Below are positions 3,682 through 59,667 of a stretch of DNA of 64,000 nucleotides, piece by piece (position 1 is the first letter of the stretch; each line of letters begins with the position of its first letter). The notes below the pieces were generated by a model. The model had not been told where the DNA came from, did no database searches, and was given only the letters and a program-made list of their open reading frames with translations. The stretch is from the IMG/VR virus record IMGVR_UViG_3300027816_000052, positions 186,001-250,000 of that record; one strand, written 5' to 3'. The position numbers were made by a program, and so were the translations under genes.

Positions 3682-6318
3682 ATGTCTTATCAATATTGTA
3701 GTGGTGGTTCTTATTGCTTTTCTTCAAACACTACTAGTGTAACAGCAAGTACTATTGGTTGTTTATCTAAAGTAGATAATGTTCAATATAGTATTAATGG
3801 TACAAGAATCTATAATACAAATTTTACTAATGAATCGATTTATGCTGAATTTCCATCTGACCCCGGATTTTTGGGTATTCAAGCGAATTTAACTTCACCA
3901 GCAACTCAGTGGGGATCAACAGGAAATTCAATTTTTGGTCCCATGAATAGACAAGCTGTTTGGTATGACGGAGATTGCAATGGGTCAACAGAAATAATTT
4001 CAGGTGAATTAACTCTTAGTTATTATTTTTATAATTCAGGAACAACAAATCAGTATTATCTAGGTTTTGGGGCTTGGATTTATCCAACAGGACAAATAAA
4101 TTTAACAATAAATAATGATATTATTTTATCTGGTGATGCGTCTATAATTGGTTCAAATTCACAACTCTATCATAGATTTTGGCACATAATTCCAATTACT
4201 TTACTATCTTGTGATAATCATATTAATTTAACAATTACTTCGTCAGGTATTATTCAAAATGCGGTTGGTTTAGTAATATATGATAGCACATATTCTGAAA
4301 TTATTAATGCGACTAATGATAATGATTTGGATATTATTTATAGTACAAATTCTTTATTAACCACAGCAGGAAAAACTGGACCTTTTGTTAAGGCGGGATG
4401 TCCGTCAGGATACATGTTAAGCGCAAATACGCTTACTGCAACTTGTATAACAACAATTTATACTGGTTGTACCTGTAATTGTTGCGATAGATACCAAATT
4501 GGTAGAATATTTGGAAATGATAATTTTGTGTATAATGATTGTAATAATCAACCAAAAATTATAACAAATTTAAATGCTGGTGAATCAATACAAATTTGTG
4601 CATGTTCTATAATAACTCCTAAAACACTATTGGGTAATAATACTTGGAGTGCGGGTAATGGTCAATTTAGAATTGTTTTAATAACATCTTGTGATAGTAG
4701 TTGTATACCAATTCCCGATGGTCCTCCCCCAACACCAACACCAGAACCAACTTGTTCTGATTGTGGATTTACAATGATTTCAGTTGGTGATAGACATACG
4801 GTGGGTATTAGTGGTGATACATTATTTTCTTGGGGAAGCAATTCAGTTGGTCAATTAGGTTTAGGATATACTGGCGGTTCTTTCTATATACCACAACAAA
4901 TGATAGACCCAACAAGTGGTGCATACCCTTGGGTTTATGTAGAAGCTGGTTTAGAATCAACATTTGCAATCAATTCAAATGGGGATTTATTTGTTTGCGG
5001 TAATTCTTCCTCAAATAATGGTGGAGATCAACTAGGATTAAACGATGGTATATCTAATATTGATACATTAACTCAAGTCACCTCACCAACCCCAAATGGG
5101 TGGTTAAAAATATGGTCAAAAAATACAGCAACAATTGCTCTTAGAAGTAATGGTACAATTTGGGGAACAGGTTTTAATGAAAAATATCAATTAGGTTTAG
5201 GTGATAATTTAGATAAAATGCAATTTACACAGATTGGTTCTGATACAGATTGGGAAGAAATTGCTAGAGGATTATTTCATACGCTTGGTTTGAAAAATAA
5301 TGGAACTATTTATTCTTGGGGAACTAATTTAACAATTCCTCAGAGAAACCCATTAGGATTAGGTGCGGGACCAGCTAATCAAGAAGCTCAAATACCAACA
5401 CAAATTACAATACCAACATACCCATTATATTCAAATAGTGTTGTGTTTAATCAAATATCCGCAGGAAATTATCATTCCGTTGCATTAGCTGATAACACAT
5501 CAATATGGGGATGGGGACAAAATACCCAAGGTCAGTTAGATTGCTTTAATTGTGGTTCGGTTGATAATTCAAGACCGTTTCCTATGGATGGTGGAATTTC
5601 TGTAAATCCACCAAGTTCTCAATCTGAAGGTGCTAATACAAATTCAGGATATACATCAGTAATAGCTGTTGGTGATATGACATTAGCCATTACGTCTGGT
5701 ATAACTTTAAATTTTGCACCATTTACTGCACCAAATGGTGTGAATTGGACACCGAATTTAAATGGTGACAGAATTTGGACTTGGGGTGAAGGATATGGAT
5801 CAAATGTAAAAACACTTTTACAAGACAATATTGATAGAATTAATTTAGAAACAAAAAATGATTGGTGTTATGTCTGGGCTGGTGGTCAAGCGGAACAAGG
5901 CGGCATTGGAACTCAAAACTTAGTTTTTTTCGCAAAAGATATTAATGGTACAATATTTACATGGGGTACCAATTCATACGGTCAGTTAGGCGTTGGACAA
6001 AACCCAATTTGTCCTGTTTGTGATAATGACTATGTTAATCCAATTGGGTTGTGTTTTAACTCAATAGATTCGGAATGTCCATGTCCTGATTGCGAATGTG
6101 TTACATATACTTTAAGCAATTATTCTACACTTGAAGTACCGTTTACTTATATTGATTGTAATAACACATTAATAAATTCAATATTAGGTAGAGGTGGTCT
6201 TGGTCCATCGACAACAACTGTCACAATTTGTGCTTGTTTAAATACAATAGTTATTGATGAAAATATCAATCCTAATTTTGTTAATATAACAACAGATCAA
6301 ACCCCTTGTGAATCATGA
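3682..6318 (+). CDS. RCC1-repeat protein, probable virion/adhesion protein
   Basis: Repeated WGSNSVGQLGLG, WGQNTQGQL, WGTNSYGQLG and ISAGNYHSVAL motifs. Confidence 0.75.
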   Translation: MSYQYCSGGSYCFSSNTTSVTASTIGCLSKVDNVQYSINGTRIYNTNFTNESIYAEFPSDPGFLGIQANLTSPATQWGSTGNSIFGPMNRQAVWYDGDCNGSTEIISGELTLSYYFYNSGTTNQYYLGFGAWIYPTGQINLTINNDIILSGDASIIGSNSQLYHRFWHIIPITLLSCDNHINLTITSSGIIQNAVGLVIYDSTYSEIINATNDNDLDIIYSTNSLLTTAGKTGPFVKAGCPSGYMLSANTLTATCITTIYTGCTCNCCDRYQIGRIFGNDNFVYNDCNNQPKIITNLNAGESIQICACSIITPKTLLGNNTWSAGNGQFRIVLITSCDSSCIPIPDGPPPTPTPEPTCSDCGFTMISVGDRHTVGISGDTLFSWGSNSVGQLGLGYTGGSFYIPQQMIDPTSGAYPWVYVEAGLESTFAINSNGDLFVCGNSSSNNGGDQLGLNDGISNIDTLTQVTSPTPNGWLKIWSKNTATIALRSNGTIWGTGFNEKYQLGLGDNLDKMQFTQIGSDTDWEEIARGLFHTLGLKNNGTIYSWGTNLTIPQRNPLGLGAGPANQEAQIPTQITIPTYPLYSNSVVFNQISAGNYHSVALADNTSIWGWGQNTQGQLDCFNCGSVDNSRPFPMDGGISVNPPSSQSEGANTNSGYTSVIAVGDMTLAITSGITLNFAPFTAPNGVNWTPNLNGDRIWTWGEGYGSNVKTLLQDNIDRINLETKNDWCYVWAGGQAEQGGIGTQNLVFFAKDINGTIFTWGTNSYGQLGVGQNPICPVCDNDYVNPIGLCFNSIDSECPCPDCECVTYTLSNYSTLEVPFTYIDCNNTLINSILGRGGLGPSTTTVTICACLNTIVIDENINPNFVNITTDQTPCES

Positions 6319-49972: not shown

Positions 49973-50236
49973 ATGAGTACTGAAATGAGAAAACTCATAA
50001 ATGAGTTTAATAACATTAACGAATCAAGTTTAAATAGAATATATAGTCATATTCAAAAATATGAATGCGCAATTATAACAGCGTTTAAAGGTAAGTTAAC
50101 TAACTGTAGAACCGAAAATGATAATGAAAAAAGAATATATATTAGACAGAACAAGGATAGAAATAAACTTTTAAAATCAGCTTTATTATTTTTTGGATAT
50201 CAAATTACAAAAGTAAAAGGTACTTATGTTGAATAA
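49973..50236 (+). pseudogene. Probably 3'-truncated late gene (ESSLNRIY...CAIITAF family)
   Basis: The frame stops at KGTYVE* exactly where a half attC-like site begins. Confidence 0.5.
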
Positions 50237-50274
50237 ACCACAAACCCGCCACTTGCATATACACGCTGTTATAA
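50232..50274 (+). repeat. Truncated attC-like site (right arm only)
   Basis: ATAAACCACAAACC...TATACACGCTGTTATAA resembles the right half of the 54977-55069 site. Confidence 0.65.
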
Positions 50275-50364
50275 GCAGGTGCGGTATTATAGCACAGAAC
50301 TTGATTTGAAAGACGAAACCTTTTTCTTTTCTTTTTGTGTGGTGGGAAAATAAAATTTAAAATA

Positions 50365-52338
50365 ATGAATAAAGTATTATTACCAAAAGAAGAAATTACA
50401 CAGAAGTTAGATAGAGATAAACTTACTTTATTGAACGCTTCTATCAAAGATTATGTGAACAACTTGTATGAAAATTCAAATGATGAATACATTATACAAG
50501 ATGGTGAACCATACGCCAATGGAGAATTACATTTGGGACATTTTTTAAACAAAACCTTGAAAGATTTTGTTGTAAAATATTACTTAACAAAAGGTAAGAA
50601 AGTTAGGGTTTCATTTGGTTGGGACTGTCATGGTTTACCCATTGAAAATAAAGCAAAAGAAATGAGTGGTGATTTAATTCAAAATGCTAAATTAGTCGCA
50701 ACCAAATATTGTGATATTCAAAATAAAACTCTTGAACTTTTCGGGATTTATCCAACTGAAGGTAGGTTTAAAACTATGGATATTGATTTTATAGAAAGAG
50801 AATTATATATATACCACCAACTACTAAATGCGGGTCTAATTCTTAAAAAGAATAAGCCTACTTGGTACTCACCAACATTAAAAACAGTATTGGCTAACTC
50901 AGAAATTGAATATAAAAAAATAGAAGATGAATCTTTGTATTTTCTATTCAACTCTGATAGTTTTAAATTACTTGTTTGGACAACAACAGAATGGACTGTA
51001 AACGGAAATCAGGCAGTATGTTTAAGTAATAATATAAAATATGTTAAAACTGTTGACAATATTATTTGTAGTGAAAGTTTTGCTATTGAAAATAATTTAG
51101 ATTATGATTTGTTTGATGTGAGTAATATTAAGTCATATCATAACCACAATGGAGATTTATGTCCAATTATTTATGATGACTACGTTTCAGATGATAAAAC
51201 AGGTATAGTACATCTTTGCGGTGGACACGGTGATGAAGATTATCGAATTTTAATGGATAATAACATAACCCCCAAAAATGTGTGCGATAAAATCGGCTTA
51301 TTAAAACACATAGAAGATTTTAAAATTGATGAAAAGTTTGTATATAAACGTGAAATTTACACACACGATTATCCAATTGATTGGCGTGAAGGGAATAAGG
51401 TGTATAAAGTATTAACGGAACAAACGTATCTTGATTTTGATTTAAACAAAATAAAGACTTGTTTAAAAGAAATAAAGTTATCATCAAAAGACAGAAATCG
51501 TTTATCAACGACAATATTTTCACGCAAAGATTGGTGTATTTCAAGACAAAGAAAATGGGGTGTTAAAATACCTAATAGTAATGATATATTGGATGTTTGG
51601 TTTGATAGTGGTTCTACATTTATGATGTATGATAAACCTGCCGATATATACATTGAAGGTTCAGACCAACACAGAGGGTGGTTTCAAAGTTCGATTATAT
51701 TAGCATCAATGATTGGTCGAGTACCAACAAAAAGAATAATAACACACGGATTTATTGTTGATAACACATTAGAAAAACTATCAAAATCAAAAGGTAATGG
51801 CGGAAGTTTGGAAAAGCTGTATGAAACATATAACCCTGATGTATTAAGACTATGGGTTTTACTGTCAGATTTTAAAAACGATATTGTCTTTTCGGAAGAT
51901 TCATTAAAAAACTCTGGTAAACAATATTTTAAAATAAGAAACTTTCTCCGTTATTTATTTAATAATCTATATATATATGATTATGATGAAACAAAAGTTG
52001 ATGAAAATATTTTTTTTAAAGTAAAAGAGTTGGAAAATAAATTTGATTTACTTGTCAATGAATTTGATTTGAATAAAGCAGTAAGGGGTTTTGTTGAATT
52101 TATAAACTATTATTCATCTTTGTTGACGGAGGATATTAAAAATGAATTTTATGAATCTGACACAAATTCCAATATGAGAATTAAATATGAAACAGAGTTT
52201 TACTATGTTTTAAAACACTTAAATAAACTACTTTTTTCGATTTTACCATTTCTTTCTATGGAAATAAAAAAAGCGTGGGAAGAAAAAAGAAAAGAAAAAG
52301 ATTTACATGTAGGGACTATATTTGGAAACGAGATGTAG
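50365..52338 (+). CDS. ileS: Minimal isoleucyl-tRNA synthetase (cassette 1)
   Basis: DGEPYANGELHLGH, GWDCHGLPIE, WTTTEWT, DWCISRQR, DVWFDSG, EGSDQHRGWFQS and KLSKS. Likely start at 50365 (657 aa). Confidence 0.9.
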   Translation: MNKVLLPKEEITQKLDRDKLTLLNASIKDYVNNLYENSNDEYIIQDGEPYANGELHLGHFLNKTLKDFVVKYYLTKGKKVRVSFGWDCHGLPIENKAKEMSGDLIQNAKLVATKYCDIQNKTLELFGIYPTEGRFKTMDIDFIERELYIYHQLLNAGLILKKNKPTWYSPTLKTVLANSEIEYKKIEDESLYFLFNSDSFKLLVWTTTEWTVNGNQAVCLSNNIKYVKTVDNIICSESFAIENNLDYDLFDVSNIKSYHNHNGDLCPIIYDDYVSDDKTGIVHLCGGHGDEDYRILMDNNITPKNVCDKIGLLKHIEDFKIDEKFVYKREIYTHDYPIDWREGNKVYKVLTEQTYLDFDLNKIKTCLKEIKLSSKDRNRLSTTIFSRKDWCISRQRKWGVKIPNSNDILDVWFDSGSTFMMYDKPADIYIEGSDQHRGWFQSSIILASMIGRVPTKRIITHGFIVDNTLEKLSKSKGNGGSLEKLYETYNPDVLRLWVLLSDFKNDIVFSEDSLKNSGKQYFKIRNFLRYLFNNLYIYDYDETKVDENIFFKVKELENKFDLLVNEFDLNKAVRGFVEFINYYSSLLTEDIKNEFYESDTNSNMRIKYETEFYYVLKHLNKLLFSILPFLSMEIKKAWEEKRKEKDLHVGTIFGNEM

Positions 52339-52345
52339 CACTTGC

Positions 52346-52465
52346 TTATAACGGTTGCAAATATAAAACGTTTTAAACTAAACTTAAATTGAAAAACAGT
52401 ATATAAATATAAACCAACAATAAATTTGGAACGCTGAAATAAATGTTTTATATTTGTTGTTATAA
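52346..52465 (+). repeat. attC-like hairpin (120 bp)
   Basis: TTATAAC-GGTTG-CAAATATAAAAC...GTTTTATATTTG-TT-GTTATAA. Confidence 0.85.
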
Positions 52466-52485
52466 ACACGTTAAATTATTTTATT

Positions 52486-52764
52486 ATGAAAACATATAAT
52501 GTAAAGTATGATGTTGGACAAGAAGTATATATACTTTTATCCAAAAAAATATTTAAAAGTAAAATTGAAAAGATTAGAATTGTTCATGGGGTACCTTATA
52601 TCAAAGGCGAAACAATGGAACAAATGGATGGAATTGAAATTGATTACTTGGTTGTAGTTAATGAACAATTCTATCCTTCAGGTGGACATTTATCTAGTTA
52701 TGATTGGTATAAACAGGATGATATTTTTTTGGATAAAGATGAACTGTTGCGGAAAATAATTTAA
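52486..52764 (+). CDS. Cassette 2 hypothetical protein
   Basis: ORF between the 52459 GTT and the 52775 AAC. Confidence 0.7.
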   Translation: MKTYNVKYDVGQEVYILLSKKIFKSKIEKIRIVHGVPYIKGETMEQMDGIEIDYLVVVNEQFYPSGGHLSSYDWYKQDDIFLDKDELLRKII

Positions 52765-52768
52765 TTGT

Positions 52769-52822
52769 TTATAACGTCTGATGATAAACAATCGTTTTAA
52801 TGTGTTTTATTTGCTGTTATAA
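52769..52822 (+). repeat. attC-like hairpin (54 bp)
   Basis: TTATAAC-GTCTGATGATAAACAATCG...GTTATAA; near-copy of 57404-57457. Confidence 0.8.
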
Positions 52823-52846
52823 GTATGTAATTTACAATTTATACCT

Positions 52847-53092
52847 ATGAAAAAAACGAAAAGAAAAATACATATTGGAAATGACCTATGGTTTTATTGG
52901 GTTGGTTCTGGTAGATGGGGTGAGGTAACTCATGTAACGATATGTTCACCAGATGAACAATATTATAAAATAGATGCAAGTGATGTTGCAAGTAGTGAAA
53001 TGTATGTTGGTGCGGAAGGGTCATTTCCAACACAAATATTACCGTCAAAAGTTAAAGAATATATTGAAAATAAAATAATAAATAAATTTTAA
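52847..53092 (+). CDS. Cassette 3 hypothetical protein
   Basis: ORF between hairpins. Confidence 0.7.
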   Translation: MKKTKRKIHIGNDLWFYWVGSGRWGEVTHVTICSPDEQYYKIDASDVASSEMYVGAEGSFPTQILPSKVKEYIENKIINKF

Positions 53093-53100
53093 ATTATTAC

Positions 53101-53195
53101 TTATAACGGTTGGGTGTATGAGAAGGTTTGCTTAGATGAACTTTCAAATTAACCACTGAACTTTATAGCAAACTTTCTTATACACCTTGTTATGT
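53101..53195 (+). repeat. attC-like hairpin (95 bp)
   Basis: GGTGTATGAGAAGGTTTGCT / AGCAAACTTTCTTATACACC stem. Confidence 0.88.
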
Positions 53196-53263
53196 GTAGG
53201 TGTGGTTAATTAAGGTAGAATGTTAAATAGTAGAAATGAACAAAAATTTTAAAAGAAAAATAT

Positions 53264-53674
53264 ATGAATTATAAACAAAAAATTACAACTATCAATTATT
53301 TTGAAAAGGTGGTTAAAATTTCTCTAACAAGAGAAGAGTGGAATTCATCTGGAACTTGGGTAGAGTCAATGATGAAAAAAGGTTGTGAAAGACTGAGTAA
53401 GGATTGGTTTGAAGATTTACATCACTTAGTTATGCGACCAATAAGTGACGAAATAAACTTTTCTGGTAAAAACTATACTTATGATGTGGATATAACATTT
53501 GATATACCAAGAGAATTACTGAGAATGTTTGTATATTCAATCGGTCAAATTGCTTATGATTTTGATGTTAAAGGTATAACTTCGGTTACTGCTCAAAATA
53601 TAGTGGGAAAAATAAACAAACAATTAAAAGAACAACTACCAAATGATGATAAATGGTTTCATTATGGATTTTGA
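53264..53674 (+). CDS. Cassette 4 hypothetical protein
   Basis: ORF between hairpins. Confidence 0.7.
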   Translation: MNYKQKITTINYFEKVVKISLTREEWNSSGTWVESMMKKGCERLSKDWFEDLHHLVMRPISDEINFSGKNYTYDVDITFDIPRELLRMFVYSIGQIAYDFDVKGITSVTAQNIVGKINKQLKEQLPNDDKWFHYGF

Positions 53675-53732
53675 TTTTTCTTTTAAAATTTTCAACCGAA
53701 ATGTTGATTAGAACGATGAACGGAACGCTTAC

Positions 53733-54208
53733 ACATAACGTATATCGGCTAAACGCAGTATTTAAAAACTTTTGCGAGGGAAATAATTAATCAATTAAAT
53801 AATAATAATTAAAAACAAAAAGTAAAATGGAAATCAAAACAAAATTTGACGTAAACAATTTGGTGAAAAGAAAATTCGACACCAATTCAAAGAACCAGAT
53901 GAGTGCTTTGGAAGTAATGGAAGTGATTGCACAAACTTGCTATGCAGGAACGCAGGTATTTTATTTGTGCAAACATGTAATTGCTCAAAAGGAATTTGTA
54001 GAAAAGTATTCTGAAAAAGGAGAATTTACTTGGGTGATTGCTCACAGTATTTCACAAGAAGAAAATCAGGCAGGATGGAGAAAATACCGTGAAGATGAAT
54101 TGATAGAAGCACCAAAAGAAGTGATTGACATTATACTTGGTAATTCTTAATTGTTCAATTGTGCGGTGGGAAAGTTTTTAAATATTGTCGTTTTAGCCGT
54201 TGTTATGC
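53733..54208 (+). repeat. attC-like hairpin with a gene in its loop (476 bp)
   Basis: CGGCTAAACGCAGTATTTAAAAACTTT pairs with AAAGTTTTTAAATATTGTCGTTTTAGCCG. Confidence 0.8.
53827..54150 (+). CDS. Hypothetical protein inside the attC-like loop
   Basis: 107-aa ORF with an A-rich leader. Confidence 0.7.
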   Translation: MEIKTKFDVNNLVKRKFDTNSKNQMSALEVMEVIAQTCYAGTQVFYLCKHVIAQKEFVEKYSEKGEFTWVIAHSISQEENQAGWRKYREDELIEAPKEVIDIILGNS

Positions 54209-54273
54209 GAAGGTGTGGCAACTCCAAAATTTCAAATTATAGACAAAACTTTCTTGCCACACTTTTGCATAAC
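54202..54273 (+). mobile_element. Empty cassette body (cassette 5, 72 bp)
   Basis: GTTATGCGAAGGTGTGGCAA...TTGCCACACTTTTGCATAAC with no ORF between. Confidence 0.8.
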
Positions 54274-54351
54274 GGTTGTAAATATGAGAAGTAAATTTTA
54301 CCTATAAAAATTAGATAAATCAAAATTTATTTCTTATATTTGTTGTTATAA
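54267..54351 (+). repeat. attC-like hairpin (85 bp)
   Basis: AAATATGAGAAGTAAATTTT / AAAATTTATTTCTTATATTT stem. Confidence 0.85.
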
Positions 54352-54382
54352 GTATGTAAAACAAACTAAATAATAATTAAAT

Positions 54383-54613
54383 ATGAAAATTGAAGGTCAA
54401 ATTACGCTAGATGGTATATTATATACACTGTTTATTTTATTCTGTTTATTTTTAACAATAGGTAGTTCTATTAGTGGGTGGTGGTATTTATCACACTTTG
54501 GATTCAGTGTAAAACAATTTTTGGTAAATATTTTAGTTTCGTCTTCAACTTTATTTATGATCTGGATGATTTTCACTAAAATATTTATTATAAAAATAAA
54601 CAGAATAAAGTAG
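54383..54613 (+). CDS. Cassette 6 small membrane protein (2 TM)
   Basis: Two hydrophobic helices. Confidence 0.7.
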   Translation: MKIEGQITLDGILYTLFILFCLFLTIGSSISGWWYLSHFGFSVKQFLVNILVSSSTLFMIWMIFTKIFIIKINRIK

Positions 54614-54626
54614 TTTGTTTTATTAC

Positions 54627-54757
54627 TTATAACGGTTGAGTATAACCGAAGGTGGGGATTAGAAGTGCCGAACCCTGACTTACCTACAAAAGTAAATTAG
54701 AAGCACAATATCTGAATGTTGGAACTACACCCCACTTTTGGTTATACTTTGTTAGGT
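54627..54757 (+). repeat. attC-like hairpin (131 bp)
   Basis: AGTATAACCGAAGGTGGGG / CCCCACTTTTGGTTATACT stem. Confidence 0.88.
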
Positions 54758-54777
54758 GTATGTAAATTTTACGGATT

Positions 54778-54966
54778 ATGAAAGATATACAACTGTTAAT
54801 TGATATGAAAGTTTCTTTAGGTAGGGAAACATTATTATTTCAGATACTTGGTAAGTATGGTGATAAAATACCAATGGAACTTCAAGAAGAACTACGAAAA
54901 TTGGCAGAAGAAGAAAGAAACTTTGGTGAAATGAAGAAACGAACTTTGAAGGGTGTGTTGGAGTAA
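54778..54966 (+). CDS. Cassette 7 hypothetical protein
   Basis: 62-aa ORF between hairpins. Confidence 0.65.
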   Translation: MKDIQLLIDMKVSLGRETLLFQILGKYGDKIPMELQEELRKLAEEERNFGEMKKRTLKGVLE

Positions 54967-54976
54967 AATTTATTAC

Positions 54977-55069
54977 ACCTAACGGTTGGGTGTATGAAAC
55001 GTAGCCACGCACAATACTTAATATAAACCACAGACCTTAATTGGCTATGTTTTATACACGATGTTAGCA
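54977..55069 (+). repeat. attC-like hairpin (93 bp)
   Basis: GTGTATGAAACGTAGCCA / TGGCTATGTTTTATACAC stem. Confidence 0.88.
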
Positions 55070-55175
55070 GTAGTACGGATTTAAACTACAAATGCTCATT
55101 CGGAGAACTGAACCTTTTTCTTTTCTTTTTTGTGGGTTGGACAAAATAAATTTGAAAAATTTAAAAATAAATAAT

Positions 55176-55409
55176 ATGAAATTAGAAACAATTGTAAAAG
55201 TTACACCAGATGGTGGAGTTGAAATTCCTTCTGATATGAAAGTTGGAACTGGATTGATGAATATGGTAAAAGAATTACGTGATAATGAATGGAGAACATT
55301 TGAACATCACGATAATTGGATTAAAAACGAACATTATCCAAATCCAACATTTGAACAACAATTTGATACAGGTAATGCTTATAAAGAAATGTTAAAAACT
55401 AAAATTTAA
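55176..55409 (+). CDS. Cassette 8 ORF a
   Basis: Likely start at 55176; the track's start at 55092 lies in the cassette flank. Confidence 0.6.
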   Translation: MKLETIVKVTPDGGVEIPSDMKVGTGLMNMVKELRDNEWRTFEHHDNWIKNEHYPNPTFEQQFDTGNAYKEMLKTKI

Positions 55410-55413
55410 AACT

Positions 55414-56013
55414 ATGATGAAAATTGAAGCAAAAAAAGACGGTAAAGGAAACATTGTAATATCGGAAGATTCCTTTGAAATGATACTGGCTTGTTTAGAT
55501 AATCAAAAATTTGTTGGTGAACAGCCACAAAATGGTGATTCGCTTTCGGTAGGCGAAGACAACTATTGGAAAGGACAAGAAGATATTCAAAACACTATTG
55601 ACCATTATAATAGAGAATGTAGAAAAATATTACATCAAAAATATGTTTTAAGAACAGAATCTGATGGTTATTTTCTTGCTAAAAAATATGAACATCAAAC
55701 AGAAGATACTGAATGGACTGGTGAAGATGTTGGATTAGTGTATGAACTATTCAAAGATACAAGAATAATTTATAATGAAACAAGAGATTTATTACCATTA
55801 GATGGTAGTGAAGAAATTAAGGAAGGAAGTACTCCAATTGGTAAAACAAAAGATGGGTGGATTGCAGTTGAACAAGAATCAAGACCTTGGTTAATTGAAA
55901 GAGCATTGGGATATGATGGTGATTATTTAACAATTTCTGAAGATGGCAGTAAGAATAGACCTTGGAAACAAGATGAAATTCGAAAAATTATAAACATATT
56001 TAATAATAAATAA
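55414..56013 (+). CDS. Cassette 8 ORF b
   Basis: 199-aa ORF. Confidence 0.7.
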   Translation: MMKIEAKKDGKGNIVISEDSFEMILACLDNQKFVGEQPQNGDSLSVGEDNYWKGQEDIQNTIDHYNRECRKILHQKYVLRTESDGYFLAKKYEHQTEDTEWTGEDVGLVYELFKDTRIIYNETRDLLPLDGSEEIKEGSTPIGKTKDGWIAVEQESRPWLIERALGYDGDYLTISEDGSKNRPWKQDEIRKIINIFNNK

Positions 56014-56014
56014 A

Positions 56015-56422
56015 ATGGGAATATTTGATTGTTTAATAGATAAAGACAATGGAAAACCAAAATCTGATATGGAATATATTTACAGATTAGATATGGTTTG
56101 GATACCTAACAAACTTGAAAGTAAACCAATTAAAATTGGAACGATAATGAATAATGTTATTCAACGAGATAATGGCAGTTATGAATTTACTTGTAAAGAA
56201 ACTGGTGAAAGATTACAAGCAACTTATTCTTGGGCTTTGGCTGAAAACACACCAGAAAATGTTGAAAGAATAAAAATATATGATGATGAATATTTAAAAT
56301 TCAAAGAATACGAAAGAAAAATAAATTCTTTGAGAAATAATATTATTACTCTTAAAGAGCGTGGAGAAAAAAGAAAAGAAAAAGATATTGCAGATGAAAC
56401 TCAAATCGGAGAACAAATGTAG
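56015..56422 (+). CDS. Cassette 8 ORF c
   Basis: 135 aa; the C-terminus reads through the cassette 3' flank. Confidence 0.7.
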   Translation: MGIFDCLIDKDNGKPKSDMEYIYRLDMVWIPNKLESKPIKIGTIMNNVIQRDNGSYEFTCKETGERLQATYSWALAENTPENVERIKIYDDEYLKFKEYERKINSLRNNIITLKERGEKRKEKDIADETQIGEQM

Positions 56423-56428
56423 TATTAC

Positions 56429-56487
56429 ACATAACGGTTCGGCGGGTTGCCGTTGTGCATTCAATAACGGCAACCCGACTGTTATGC
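56429..56487 (+). repeat. attC-like hairpin (59 bp)
   Basis: CGGGTTGCCGTT / AACGGCAACCCG perfect stem. Confidence 0.88.
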
Positions 56488-56527
56488 GGGGTCATTCTTT
56501 TTCACTCGGTAAAAAGCAAAAGGTACA

Positions 56528-56830
56528 ATGGCAAAAAGGAAGTTAGGCCCATCGAGCGGCAAGTGCTCCAAGTGCGGAGGTCACATCAGCATCAATCCAC
56601 CAAGACCGTGCCGCCGCTGCTCAGGCGAAAAGCCTCAGGCGAGCTCGGAAAAGAAAGAGCGCGTGTTCACCGAGAGCGAGGTGAAGGCGATGGTGCGAGA
56701 GATTCTCGCAGAACAGGAACGACTGCATATAAGCGATGGATCCGGAGGACACGATATTGTGTGGGCGGTCGGGATCGGAGAGGTCGAGGCGGTGTTTAAA
56801 GCGCACGGCATTGTTCTCGATCCCGCATAA
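56528..56830 (+). CDS. Cassette 9 GC-rich zinc-ribbon protein
   Basis: CSKC...CRRC; the stop codon TAA lies inside the GCATAAC core. Confidence 0.7.
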   Translation: MAKRKLGPSSGKCSKCGGHISINPPRPCRRCSGEKPQASSEKKERVFTESEVKAMVREILAEQERLHISDGSGGHDIVWAVGIGEVEAVFKAHGIVLDPA

Positions 56831-56954
56831 CGGTTGACGGTATGAAAAGTTGGGGATTAAAAGATATAAACTTTCGCACCGATACAATGATAATTAATAG
56901 TACAAACCTTCGGGAACGCACACACGCCCCAATTTTTTATACCGTGTGTTATGC
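56825..56954 (+). repeat. attC-like hairpin (130 bp)
   Basis: ACGGTATGAAAAGTTGGGG / CCCCAATTTTTTATACCGT stem. Confidence 0.88.
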
Positions 56955-56975
56955 CCCGTTTTTATCCAATTTTTT

Positions 56976-57398
56976 ATGTTACAAGACGAATTAGCATTAC
57001 AATATAAATACAAAAAACTTCCATCAGAATTATCTGACAAGGTAAGAAACCAATATTTGTCTGAAATACCAAAATGTTTGAATATCAATGGTGATTCTGA
57101 ATTTGAGTTAAAAACAGCAAACGGTACAATAATTTCAAAAGGATATGAAAGAATTGTAATTGGAGATTATGGAGCGTTTATTGAATTTAACAGAAATCAA
57201 GTTATTGACGAAAATATTTGTATTCAAAAGGGGCAAGAATATAGAATTAACGATGAAAAATATAGTAAGAATGTGAAATATTTTTGGTTGACTGCAAAAG
57301 ATTCATCGTGTATAAAGATATATTTACAACAGAAAACGGTATCATACGCAGATTATAAACCAAATATGTATTACGTGTCTCCATTTGAGGTTTTTTAA
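56976..57398 (+). CDS. Cassette 10 hypothetical protein
   Basis: GYERIVIGDYGAFIEF; likely start at 56976. Confidence 0.7.
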   Translation: MLQDELALQYKYKKLPSELSDKVRNQYLSEIPKCLNINGDSEFELKTANGTIISKGYERIVIGDYGAFIEFNRNQVIDENICIQKGQEYRINDEKYSKNVKYFWLTAKDSSCIKIYLQQKTVSYADYKPNMYYVSPFEVF

Positions 57399-57403
57399 AT
57401 GGG

Positions 57404-57457
57404 GAATAACGTCCGATGATAAACAATCGTTTTAATGTTGTTTATCATTTGTTATGT
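57404..57457 (+). repeat. attC-like hairpin (54 bp)
   Basis: ATGATAAACA / TGTTTATCAT stem. Confidence 0.85.
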
Positions 57458-57536
57458 GTAGGTGTGGATTATTAAGGTGGAATGTTTAATCGGAGAACTG
57501 AACAAAAATTTTAAAAGAAAAATTAATATATAGATT

Positions 57537-57761
57537 ATGGGAAACATAGTTAAAAAATTTGAAAACTTTAAAGATGGGTTATACGTCACATGTAAAAACG
57601 CACCAGAAGATAATTACCAACTTCATAATAAAAAGGATTATTTGGTTATTAAATATGATAACCAACCGTATGGTGTTGGACGAGTAACTATATTTAACCC
57701 TTCAAGTAGAAAGGAAGAAACATATCCTAAAACTATGTTTAGTGAACCATTTAACAAATAA
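57537..57761 (+). CDS. Cassette 11 hypothetical protein
   Basis: 74-aa ORF. Confidence 0.65.
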   Translation: MGNIVKKFENFKDGLYVTCKNAPEDNYQLHNKKDYLVIKYDNQPYGVGRVTIFNPSSRKEETYPKTMFSEPFNK

Positions 57762-57819
57762 TTTTTCTTTTAAAATTTTAAACATAGATGTTGATTAGAA
57801 CGATGGGTGGAACACTTAC

Positions 57820-57952
57820 ACATAACGTTTCGCAGCTTGGCGAGGTGCGGGATTTACAGCACTAAAGACGATTAGAATTACAAATTTTTAAATAAAAAAC
57901 AATATGTCAAACGAAGTACAAAACCCCGCATCTTGCCAAACTGCTGTTATAT
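57820..57952 (+). repeat. attC-like hairpin (133 bp) containing the start codon of the next gene
   Basis: GCAGCTTGGCGAGGTGCGGG / CCCGCATCTTGCCAAACTGC stem; ATG at 57904. Confidence 0.88.
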
Positions 57953-58185
57953 GCCGCCTTTTTGATTTGGGAAGGAAAGGGTTAACATGGGATTGGTCAA
58001 AATTGGAACTGAAAAAACAATACTTTATCAGTCGTGAAGATGTTTTGAATATGAATATGCTTTGGCAACTTGCACAAGGTGGTATAACTGAACAAGCACA
58101 ATCTTTGAATGCAGAAGTATTGATTTGGGAAGATGTCATAAAAAACGGATGGTACTTGTTGCTGAGACCGCAAGGTGGCATATAA
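57904..58185 (+). CDS. Cassette 12 protein starting within the upstream hairpin
   Basis: The first ~15 codons (MSNEVQNPASCQTAV) are hairpin sequence. Confidence 0.65.
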   Translation: MSNEVQNPASCQTAVICRLFDLGRKGLTWDWSKLELKKQYFISREDVLNMNMLWQLAQGGITEQAQSLNAEVLIWEDVIKNGWYLLLRPQGGI

Positions 58186-58313
58186 CGGTTTGCGTATTGC
58201 TGACGTTGCCAATTTGAAACACAAATGTTGAATTAAAAACAAAAAAATAAATATGAAAATCAGAGTTGAAGTTAAAGACGAAGCTGGCAATGTTCAGCAA
58301 TACGTTGTTAGGC
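58180..58313 (+). repeat. attC-like hairpin (134 bp) containing the start codon of the next gene
   Basis: CGTATTGCTGACGTTGCCA / TGGCAATGTTCAGCAATACG stem; ATG at 58253. Confidence 0.88.
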
Positions 58314-58471
58314 GCAGTTACTTGGTCAAATTTGTTGACCCGAAGAAAGAGTATCCTGTTACCTACACAATTAAACACGATGGCACAAGAGTAAATGAAC
58401 CTGCAATGCTCAAAGGCGAAGATTTAACCGAAAATCAAATTGCACAACTTTTCTCGAAGGGTTTGTTGTAA
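58253..58471 (+). CDS. Cassette 13 protein starting within the upstream hairpin
   Basis: The first ~19 codons (MKIRVEVKDEAGNVQQYVV) are hairpin sequence. Confidence 0.65.
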   Translation: MKIRVEVKDEAGNVQQYVVRRSYLVKFVDPKKEYPVTYTIKHDGTRVNEPAMLKGEDLTENQIAQLFSKGLL

Positions 58472-58475
58472 TTGC

Positions 58476-58570
58476 GCCTAACGATTGGGTGTATATGTAG
58501 TTTTTTATTTGGAAATGTCAAAACTTATTCGTACCTTTGTAAAAAAAATTACATATACACCTTGTTATGT
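58476..58570 (+). repeat. attC-like hairpin (95 bp) with a promoter in its loop
   Basis: GGTGTATATGTAGTTTTTT / AAAAAATTACATATACACC stem. Confidence 0.88.
58508..58539 (+). promoter_or_regulatory. Bacteroidota housekeeping-type promoter inside the attC-like loop
   Basis: TTTG-N20-TACCTTTG. Confidence 0.75.
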
Positions 58571-58601
58571 ATAGTTTATTCACAAATTAAAATAAAAGTT
58601 T

Positions 58602-58808
58602 ATGAAACAACCAAAAATTAAAATAACCGACATTCACGGTAAAGACTGGGGTATTAAAAAAGTAAAAACACTTCATTGGAATTTGGACGGAAAATTAAAC
58701 ACAATTCAAGTTGATTTTTCTGGAACTATGGATATGTATGATTTAGATGATGAAGGCGTTTTTACTAATCCACATGGTAATATGAAAGGCGTTATCATTT
58801 GGGAATAA
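58602..58808 (+). CDS. Cassette 14 hypothetical protein
   Basis: 68-aa ORF. Confidence 0.65.
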   Translation: MKQPKIKITDIHGKDWGIKKVKTLHWNLDGKLNTIQVDFSGTMDMYDLDDEGVFTNPHGNMKGVIIWE

Positions 58809-58813
58809 ATTAT

Positions 58814-58866
58814 ACATAACTAGTATATATAAGTAAGTATAATCTAACCACTTAAAAATAAAGGAC
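58814..58866 (+). other. Candidate attI-like half-site between the last cassette and the recombinase
   Basis: ACATAAC is followed by TAGTATATATAAGTAAG rather than by a hairpin; no partner GTT arm. Confidence 0.5.
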
Positions 58867-59667
58867 TTGAATAATAAAATTATTAAGATTTGTGAAGAAA
58901 AGTTTATATATTTAAACTATTCACCAAGAACAAAAGATAATTATCTTTCACATATAAAAAATTTCTTAAATCACATTGGTAGTAAACAAGTAATACATTG
59001 TAATGCTCAAGATTTTCAATCCTATTTAGATAATTATAAATTCACTTCAACAGCACAACAAAACCAAATCATTAACGCAATAAGATTTCTCTACAAATTT
59101 GGTCTTAATAAAAAATATGATAAAATATCGTTTAAAAGACCTAAATCTGAGAAGAAACTACCAAAAGTAATTGATTCAAATTCAATCATTGATAAATTAA
59201 ATAAGATTGATAATCTCAAACACAAAGCAATTCTCACCTTAACTTTTTCAGTTGGTCTACGAGTCTCAGAAATAATTAATCTTAAAATAGAGGATATTGA
59301 TTCCAAGCGAATGTTAATCCACATTAAGAACGCAAAAGGAAGAAAAGATAGAGTTGTTCCATTATCTCAAAATGTATTAAGACTATTAAGAACTTATTAT
59401 AAAAATTATATCCCAAAGGAATATCTCTTCAATGGACAAAACAGTACTAAATATTCAATAGGTAGTTGTCAGAAAATATACAAAAAATATATTGAATCTG
59501 ATGGACATATACACACACTTAGACACAGTTTTGCAACATCCTTATTAGAAAATGGAACAGATTTAAGAATTATTCAAAAAATTCTTGGTCATTCAAATGT
59601 TAAAACCACAGAAATATACACACACGTTTCAAATCAAATTTTGAACAAAATTAATTTGCCAGTTTGA
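58867..59667 (+). CDS. Compact tyrosine recombinase (integron-integrase-like, lacking the IntI insertion)
   Basis: SAM-like N-terminus YSPRTKDNY, GLRVSE (R), AKGRKDR (K), HTLRHSFAT (HxxR), LGH and TEIYTH (Y). TTG start. Confidence 0.92.
   Translation: MNNKIIKICEEKFIYLNYSPRTKDNYLSHIKNFLNHIGSKQVIHCNAQDFQSYLDNYKFTSTAQQNQIINAIRFLYKFGLNKKYDKISFKRPKSEKKLPKVIDSNSIIDKLNKIDNLKHKAILTLTFSVGLRVSEIINLKIEDIDSKRMLIHIKNAKGRKDRVVPLSQNVLRLLRTYYKNYIPKEYLFNGQNSTKYSIGSCQKIYKKYIESDGHIHTLRHSFATSLLENGTDLRIIQKILGHSNVKTTEIYTHVSNQILNKINLPV

Follow-up and report, generated by a model that had tools for sequence, protein, structure and literature searches.

A complete 107-codon gene was located inside the loop of a conserved, attC-like hairpin in the gene-cassette array of a giant phage. 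The same hairpin arms enclosed at least eight unrelated genes in other phages, so the structure is a reusable gene carrier and not an accident. The term attC-like refers to form only. The analysed window was a 64,000-nt stretch comprising bases 186001-250000 of the 256,029-bp IMG/VR virus record IMGVR_UViG_3300027816_000052, with about 28% GC.

A gene-bearing hairpin

The first-pass annotation had proposed that arms at 53733-53773 and 54171-54208 pair around ORF 53827-54150, and this was confirmed. A gapped local alignment of 53725-53790 with the reverse complement of 54150-54215 paired 53746-53772 with 54171-54199, showing 27 matches in 29 columns, two single-base bulges and a score of 39. 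For 9,057 segment pairs of the same geometry across the window, the mean score was 14.2 with a standard deviation of 2.9 and a 99th percentile of 23. The only pair of similar strength was formed by the flanks of the neighbouring ORF 53264-53674. The left arm had its only strong partner in the window at 54171. The long-range stem was present in the minimum-energy and centroid folds of 53720-54280 on both strands (z of -3.6 and -3.0), and the + strand folded more stably, with -66.6 against -58.8 kcal/mol. No TAAC, GTTA, RYYYAAC or GTTRRRY was present in 53740-54201; the region therefore cannot be split into ordinary units. In the predicted fold, the box GTTATGC paired with GCATAAC (54267-54273) of the adjacent 72-nt hairpin and not with 53733-53739. 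The identical sequence was detected in other IMG/VR contigs and in independent run assemblies, so it is not an assembly artefact. The region and its surroundings comprised the following features.

53733-53739 (+): left box ACATAAC (R''-type); homology with other genomes breaks here or up to about 7 nt to its right
53740-53745 (+): unpaired spacer GTATAT, facing only TT (54200-54201) on the other side; GGTT-type variants occur in other copies
53746-53772 (+): 5' arm of the attC-like hairpin
53773-53784 (+): inner left motif TGCGAGGGAAAT, constant in copies that carry different ORFs and a direct-repeat partner of 54161-54174
53785-53826 (+): AT-rich leader of the cargo gene
53827-54150 (+): cargo ORF of 107 aa (ORF107)
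54161-54174 (+): inner right motif GTGCGGTGGGAAAG, near-constant in copies that carry different ORFs
54171-54199 (+): 3' arm of the attC-like hairpin, with two bulged T
54202-54208 (+): right box GTTATGC, the start of the following hairpin
54202-54273 (+): short empty hairpin (GTTATGC..GCATAAC), arms 54202-54221 and 54254-54273, 90% complementary
50073-58820 (+): whole array, with the first attC-like hairpin at 50073-50274 and the last box at 58814-58820, followed by a conserved TAKTATATAT terminal element
58867-59667 (+): Xer-like tyrosine recombinase of 266 aa

ORF107 had no hit in Pfam, PHROG or NCBIfam, and the Atlas gave only unnamed clusters. It was predicted as an orphan small beta-barrel protein. 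The model was confident (pLDDT 89.5), but no fold match in PDB or BFVD reached E <= 0.001. The cargo showed no transposase or integrase features. No Rfam family matched anywhere in the window.

The array and its recombinase

The array was a strict alternation of TAAC and GTTA boxes, with 14 A modules (5'-TAAC..GTTA-3') alternating with 14 B modules (5'-GTTA..TAAC-3'). A modules were normally imperfect hairpins of 50-130 nt with attC form. B modules normally held one to three ORFs, and all ORFs of the array were on the + strand. The ends of B modules were paired as well. In the window, 12 of 14 gene-bearing bodies had inverted repeats running on directly from the boxes, including a 2-kb class I aminoacyl-tRNA-synthetase-like gene. 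In 78 related loci (1.15 Mb), 209 A-type and 75 B-type arm pairs were found, against 4 and 8 in shuffled controls. Since hairpin families are related by descent, these counts are not independent events. Many long A-type pairs from the automatic scan were false, as they joined two copies of the common 54-nt hairpin, and were removed by inspection.

The consensus of 164 distinct A hairpins kept TAAC, the following GGTTG, a GTAT.AG.AGG stem motif with its partner, and positions on the B side of both boxes. Only TAAC, GTTA and the adjoining G/T were invariant. Stem positions that varied between modules were almost always Watson-Crick paired within a module, so the pairing itself is maintained. Non-Watson-Crick pairs were G.T in 244, T.G in 17 and A.C plus C.A in 7 cases, pointing to the + strand as the folded strand. 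However, most G.T pairs sat at two fixed stem positions and could be a sequence difference between two classes of double-stranded site instead of a folding signature.

The array ended 47 nt before the recombinase gene. The recombinase carried Phage_integrase and SAM_4 domains, and its best family was XerA-type, with 195 bits against a cut-off of 220. The integron-integrase model TIGR02249 matched in two pieces that skipped model positions 204-256, with 161 bits against a cut-off of 265. The alignment to IntI4 (2a3v) skipped chain residues 178-259. The protein thus lacks the integron-integrase-specific insert. At least 80 homologues with 55-100% identity lay on IMG/VR contigs of up to 362 kb. 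The nearest cultured relatives of the recombinase were found in Cellulophaga and Polaribacter phages, and Flavobacterium phages shared array DNA. In the 256-kb record, 10 of 11 hairpin hits lay in the array. In 28 loci with 10 kb on each side of the recombinase homologue, 85 hairpins were upstream and none downstream, although this position may partly be inherited synteny among related phages.

Constant carriers and variable cargo

The block from just right of TAAC (53740-53746) to GCATAAC (54273) recurred as a whole in two other genomes, L132 and L133, with different flanks in each case. The compared arm blocks 53746-53773 and 54171-54201 were identical in all three copies (28/28 and 31/31 positions), whereas the ORF was only 89-93% identical and the leader 92%. 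Among the first 130 loci retrieved, the arms or ORF107 were found only in identical copies of the same phage. A metagenome scan with 23 nt of the left arm returned 19 loci. In those with both arms, the arms, the inner motifs TTTTGCGAGGGAAA and GTGCGGTGGGAAAG, much of the leader and trailer, and the B hairpin were constant or nearly so. The enclosed ORFs belonged to at least eight unrelated families of 107, 85, 59, 58, 62, 112, 89 and 53 aa, with BLOSUM scores of at most 51 between and 259-534 within families. The DNA outside differed in nearly every contig, giving about a dozen flanking contexts, and diverged at the TAAC boxes. The A module and its B hairpin travelled together in all complete copies examined except L152, where only the B 5' arm followed; there the B loop carried an ORF as well.

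Of 39 ORF107 homologues, the five more distant ones whose contexts were scored (51-70% identity) lay in ordinary tight operons without flanking arms. A 79%-identical copy (L135) also showed no arms when its flanks were read. The gene family therefore predates its hairpin setting and was captured. The first-pass annotation had suggested two interleaved classes of inverted-repeat-bounded modules, both able to carry cargo, and this holds generally. Its alternative, a snapshot of cassette formation, is only partly supported, since the structure is a stable, reused carrier and not a transient intermediate.

In related phages, about ten further A hairpins with different arms enclosed whole ORFs (loci L044, L078, L009, L055, L013, L022, L079, L058 and L075, and nearly whole in L062/L032). 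In the eight cases whose downstream sequence was read (L044, L078, L009, L013, L022, L079, L058 and the window), the next B module was a short empty hairpin, often a 29-nt form with the loop ATCGTTTTAATGT. In L062, the ORF ran into the 3' arm and stopped in the R' box, and the following B module carried another ORF. The same default loop capped the short A hairpins 52769-52822 and 57404-57457 and replaced the loop of the 53101-53196 hairpin in other samples. In the window, ORFs 57904-58185 and 58254-58472 started inside A loops and read through the 3' arm and the box. As a general signature, the inner G-rich motif gave only 3 relevant hits in the array, too few for statistics.

Exchange points were found at TAAC, at GTTA and at the inner ends of stems. 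Cassette 52826-53190 was an indel exactly at G|TTAT relative to the paralogous region 57395-57523. The 5' and 3' flanks of ORF 53264-53674 recurred around the unrelated ORF 57539-57761, with a perfect 19-21-nt inverted repeat abutting the start and stop codons. A conserved 3' flank ending in ACATAAC was joined to different hairpins in seven loci. In the run data, which were evaluated at contig level only, contigs broke at the hairpins, which had 10-100 times the depth of the ORFs. Two joints skipped exactly ORF 54383-54613 or ORF 54778-54966 between their B arms. No run contig skipped ORF107, no circular junction was found and an empty copy of this hairpin with a 3-33-nt loop had no match in IMG/VR.

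Recombination models and related systems

The favoured interpretation, with a probability of roughly 0.55, is an integron-like and dif-module-like capture platform whose recombination site has two loops, either of which can hold cargo. The recombination chemistry is inferred, as no direct evidence links this recombinase to the sites. It is inferred that the Xer-like recombinase acts on the boxes at the base of the stems, most likely on the folded + strand, which is also the recombinase-sense strand, as in integrons. Crossovers mainly at TAA|C would make one A plus one B module the mobile unit. In the excised circle, B 3' arm-TAAC-A 5' arm would pair with A 3' arm-GTTA-B 5' arm, giving a rod with the crossover box in the middle and a loop at each end. 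If the enzyme reads only the box and its nearby stem, cargo would be tolerated in either loop. Usually it sits in the B loop; here it sits in the A loop. ORFs would be loaded or swapped inside constant stems by a second process, probably homologous or microhomology-mediated exchange at the shared inner motifs and untranslated regions. The array would serve the phage as a hypervariable store of accessory genes. Some observations do not fit easily. Homology breaks at both TAAC and GTTA boxes are not predicted by one-strand attC chemistry alone, and a 398-nt loop should fold far less readily than that of a normal attC. Flavobacterium phage mymlan6-1 and Polaribacter phage P12002L carried the same hairpins and B flanks, there around DNA methyltransferase genes. 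A search of mymlan6-1 found no homologue of the recombinase, and the P12002L record annotates no integrase or recombinase. P12002L also held a short version of the proximal stem of this hairpin, with the same bulge and the default loop. This is P12002L_attC1 of Qi et al. 2023 (PMC9892861), which was predicted as attC by HattCI/Infernal but was not recombined by the class 1 integrase IntI1, whereas the terminal element P12002L_attC2 was.

Two other serious explanations are not excluded but appear less likely. In a double-stranded, dif-module-like system, each box with its flanks would be an asymmetric duplex site, the hairpin potential would be a by-product of inverted sites, and the ORF would simply lie inside an A module. 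The Xer-like enzyme without the insert used by integron integrases to read extrahelical bases, the strict box alternation, the match of the inverted R' site to the R'' site on both flanks and the joint movement of this A module and its B hairpin agree with this, the last paralleling the gain of C and D modules in pairs (PMC13141974). Exchange at both kinds of box would fit cointegrate formation followed by resolution at a different site. However, the arms of one module co-varied over 20-30 bp at positions differing freely between modules, far beyond a protein footprint and not expected for independent duplex sites, and minimal B hairpins kept complementary N4 positions that varied between copies. 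Judged by eye, no 11-6-11 dif-like site or fixed dyad around each box was recognised, since spacing was inconsistent. Somewhat less likely still, the stems may be mRNA structures (processing, stability or attenuation signals) repeated between small early genes and shuffled by general recombination, with the recombinase being the phage's own integrase and unrelated to the array. The shared orientation of ORFs and favoured folding strand, the excess of G.T (G.U in RNA) over A.C pairs (261 to 7), the untranslated stretches shared by unrelated cargos and the modules in phages lacking the recombinase are consistent with this, and the PeSL cassettes of T4-type phages are a precedent (PMC2839356, PMC4122927). 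An RNA-library run held a 100%-identical 4.5-kb contig across the region, which may be contaminating DNA. This reading is weakened by the confinement of the hairpins to the block directly upstream of the recombinase gene, by breakpoints at 4-nt boxes, by the absence of an Rfam match and by several ORFs that are read through 3' arms and boxes or end inside B arms, so that ribosomes would melt those stems. No T-run was seen after the stems in the sequences read, although without a promoter/terminator scan. ORF-precise swaps within shared leaders and trailers probably involve homologous exchange under any model. One-off damage, an ordinary short hairpin split by a private insertion and now inert, is very improbable. 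The near-direct repeats TGCGAGGGAAA and TGCGGTGGGAAA at the inner ends of the arms resemble a target duplication and a short-loop relative exists in P12002L, but the conservation of the arms, their reuse around unrelated ORFs and the analogous cases with other arms contradict it.

Similar to integrons and to attC clusters without integrase (CALINs) reported in phages (PMC9892861), the array comprised small, mostly orphan, co-oriented ORFs separated by imperfect hairpins with ..AAC / GTT.. boxes at their bases (although the outer 7-mers fit the integron consensus only in part), an unpaired spacer next to the box and bulged bases, here on the 3' arm of the coding strand. The two conserved G.T pairs of the family are not the classical pattern. 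A tyrosine recombinase gene is adjacent, with the array upstream of its start on its sense strand. It differed from integrons by the missing IntI-specific insert, by ORFs reading towards the recombinase, by stem complementarity continuing 10-75 nt beyond the box into the cassette body, by the coding strand being favoured, and by a site of 476 bp, where known attC sites probably measure about 57-141 bp. The dif modules of Acinetobacter plasmids (PMC13141974) share two alternating classes bounded by asymmetric, inverted sites, movement as adjacent pairs, exchange of single modules between replicons, a Xer-family recombinase and gene carriage in either class. Here, no 28-bp XerC/XerD site was recognised by eye, the sites are short boxes at the base of long, co-varying stems, the recombinase is encoded by the element itself, and the modules are much smaller (30 bp to 2 kb) and sit in a phage. 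PeSLs likewise flank small novel ORFs and coincide with insertion, deletion and replacement breakpoints, but they are promoter-plus-terminator units thought to act through homologous recombination, are scattered over several regions without being tied to a recombinase and do not enclose genes in their loops. Attempts to find similar arrays in jumbo or huge phages in the literature gave nothing relevant. In the literature that could be searched, no description was found of genes inside the hairpin loop, paired-end B modules, reusable carriers or a Xer-like recombinase coupled to such arrays.

More tentatively, phages of Bacteroidota, among them a large family of jumbo phages, may carry a gene-capture platform distinct from integrons, run by a Xer-type recombinase at a two-loop rod, with genes loaded into either loop of standard carrier hairpins. 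This suggests that cassette-style gene capture does not need an integron integrase and combines features of integrons and dif modules inside virulent-type phage genomes. As identical carriers hold many unrelated ORFs and some of those ORF families also exist without arms, it would be a natural system in which the unsolved step of cassette genesis, how an ORF becomes joined to its recombination site, can be studied directly. Integron-finding software will see these arrays as attC clusters with divergent sites and will miss modules whose loops hold genes. The cargo included the aminoacyl-tRNA synthetase-like gene, one foreign cassette ORF with 57% GC and, in cultured relatives, DNA methyltransferases, and the platform is therefore probably a source of host-range and counter-defence variation in aquatic Bacteroidota phages.

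Cargo and paired ends of the B modules

The B modules (GTTA..TAAC segments) were usually gene-bearing. The following features were relevant:

50268-52352, B module with ORF 50335-52338, a 667-aa class I aminoacyl-tRNA-synthetase-like gene
50073-50274, A hairpin (TAAC..GTTA segment) upstream of it
56528-56830, cassette ORF with 56.8% GC

The synthetase-like gene had its best match to IleRS, below the cut-off. It was bounded by box-anchored inverted ends (GTTATAAGCAGGTGC and its partner) and is therefore itself a cassette. The ORF at 56528-56830, in a phage with about 28% GC, was evidently captured from a high-GC source. A C-terminal tail (..EKRKEKD..) was shared by unrelated proteins, namely the synthetase-like protein (tail at 52283-52304), the last ORF of the three-gene cassette (tail at 56367-56384) and, judging from the DNA at about 2340-2360 of locus L136, apparently a methyltransferase of phage mymlan6. 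Their 3' ends ran into the same A-rich B arm, whose T-rich partner was located upstream of the start (50316-50336, 55114-55131).

Perfect inverted repeats of 19-21 nt abutted the start and stop of two unrelated ORFs, at 53243-53261/53674-53692 and 57505-57525/57759-57779. The wider 75-nt flanks of these ORFs were 84-91% identical. This is an ORF-precise swap inside a constant B stem.

Loops and loop-stem junctions

Two ORFs, 57904-58185 and 58254-58472, started inside the loops of A hairpins (57820-57952 and 58180-58315) and were read through the 3' arm and the GTTA box. The same layout was present in L037, L069 and L132, three of the related loci. A 13-nt default loop, ATCGTTTTAATGT, capped short hairpins of both classes and, in other samples, replaced longer loops on otherwise identical stems. 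It was located at 52784-52796 and 57419-57431, in the related loci L058, L022, L044, L078 and L009, and in L142 (Polaribacter phage P12002L). It could be a landing pad, a scar or a binding site.

In the hairpin enclosing the 107-aa ORF, G-rich inner motifs stood in direct orientation at the loop-stem junctions, with GCGAGGG.. on the left (53773-53784) and GTGCGGTGG.. on the right (54161-54174). They recurred in a different carrier, L079 (about 4895-4915 and 5255-5275), and after the 5' arms of B modules in mymlan6 and P12002L. They could represent a second recombination site or a promoter element.

Array terminus and CRISPR spacer

The last TAAC box of the array was followed by a conserved TAKTATATAT element just upstream of the recombinase gene (58814-58830; loci L049, L044, L009 and L013). 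This element is a candidate primary integration site (attI analogue).

A CRISPR array (locus L159) held a spacer identical to the 5' arm of the hairpin around the 107-aa ORF, with L159:531-566 corresponding to 53741-53776. The repeat was 31 nt long, with at least 19 copies on a fermentation-metagenome contig, and the same repeat occurred 43 times in a Bacteroidales MAG (UBA5281). A host therefore targets the conserved carrier and not its variable cargo.
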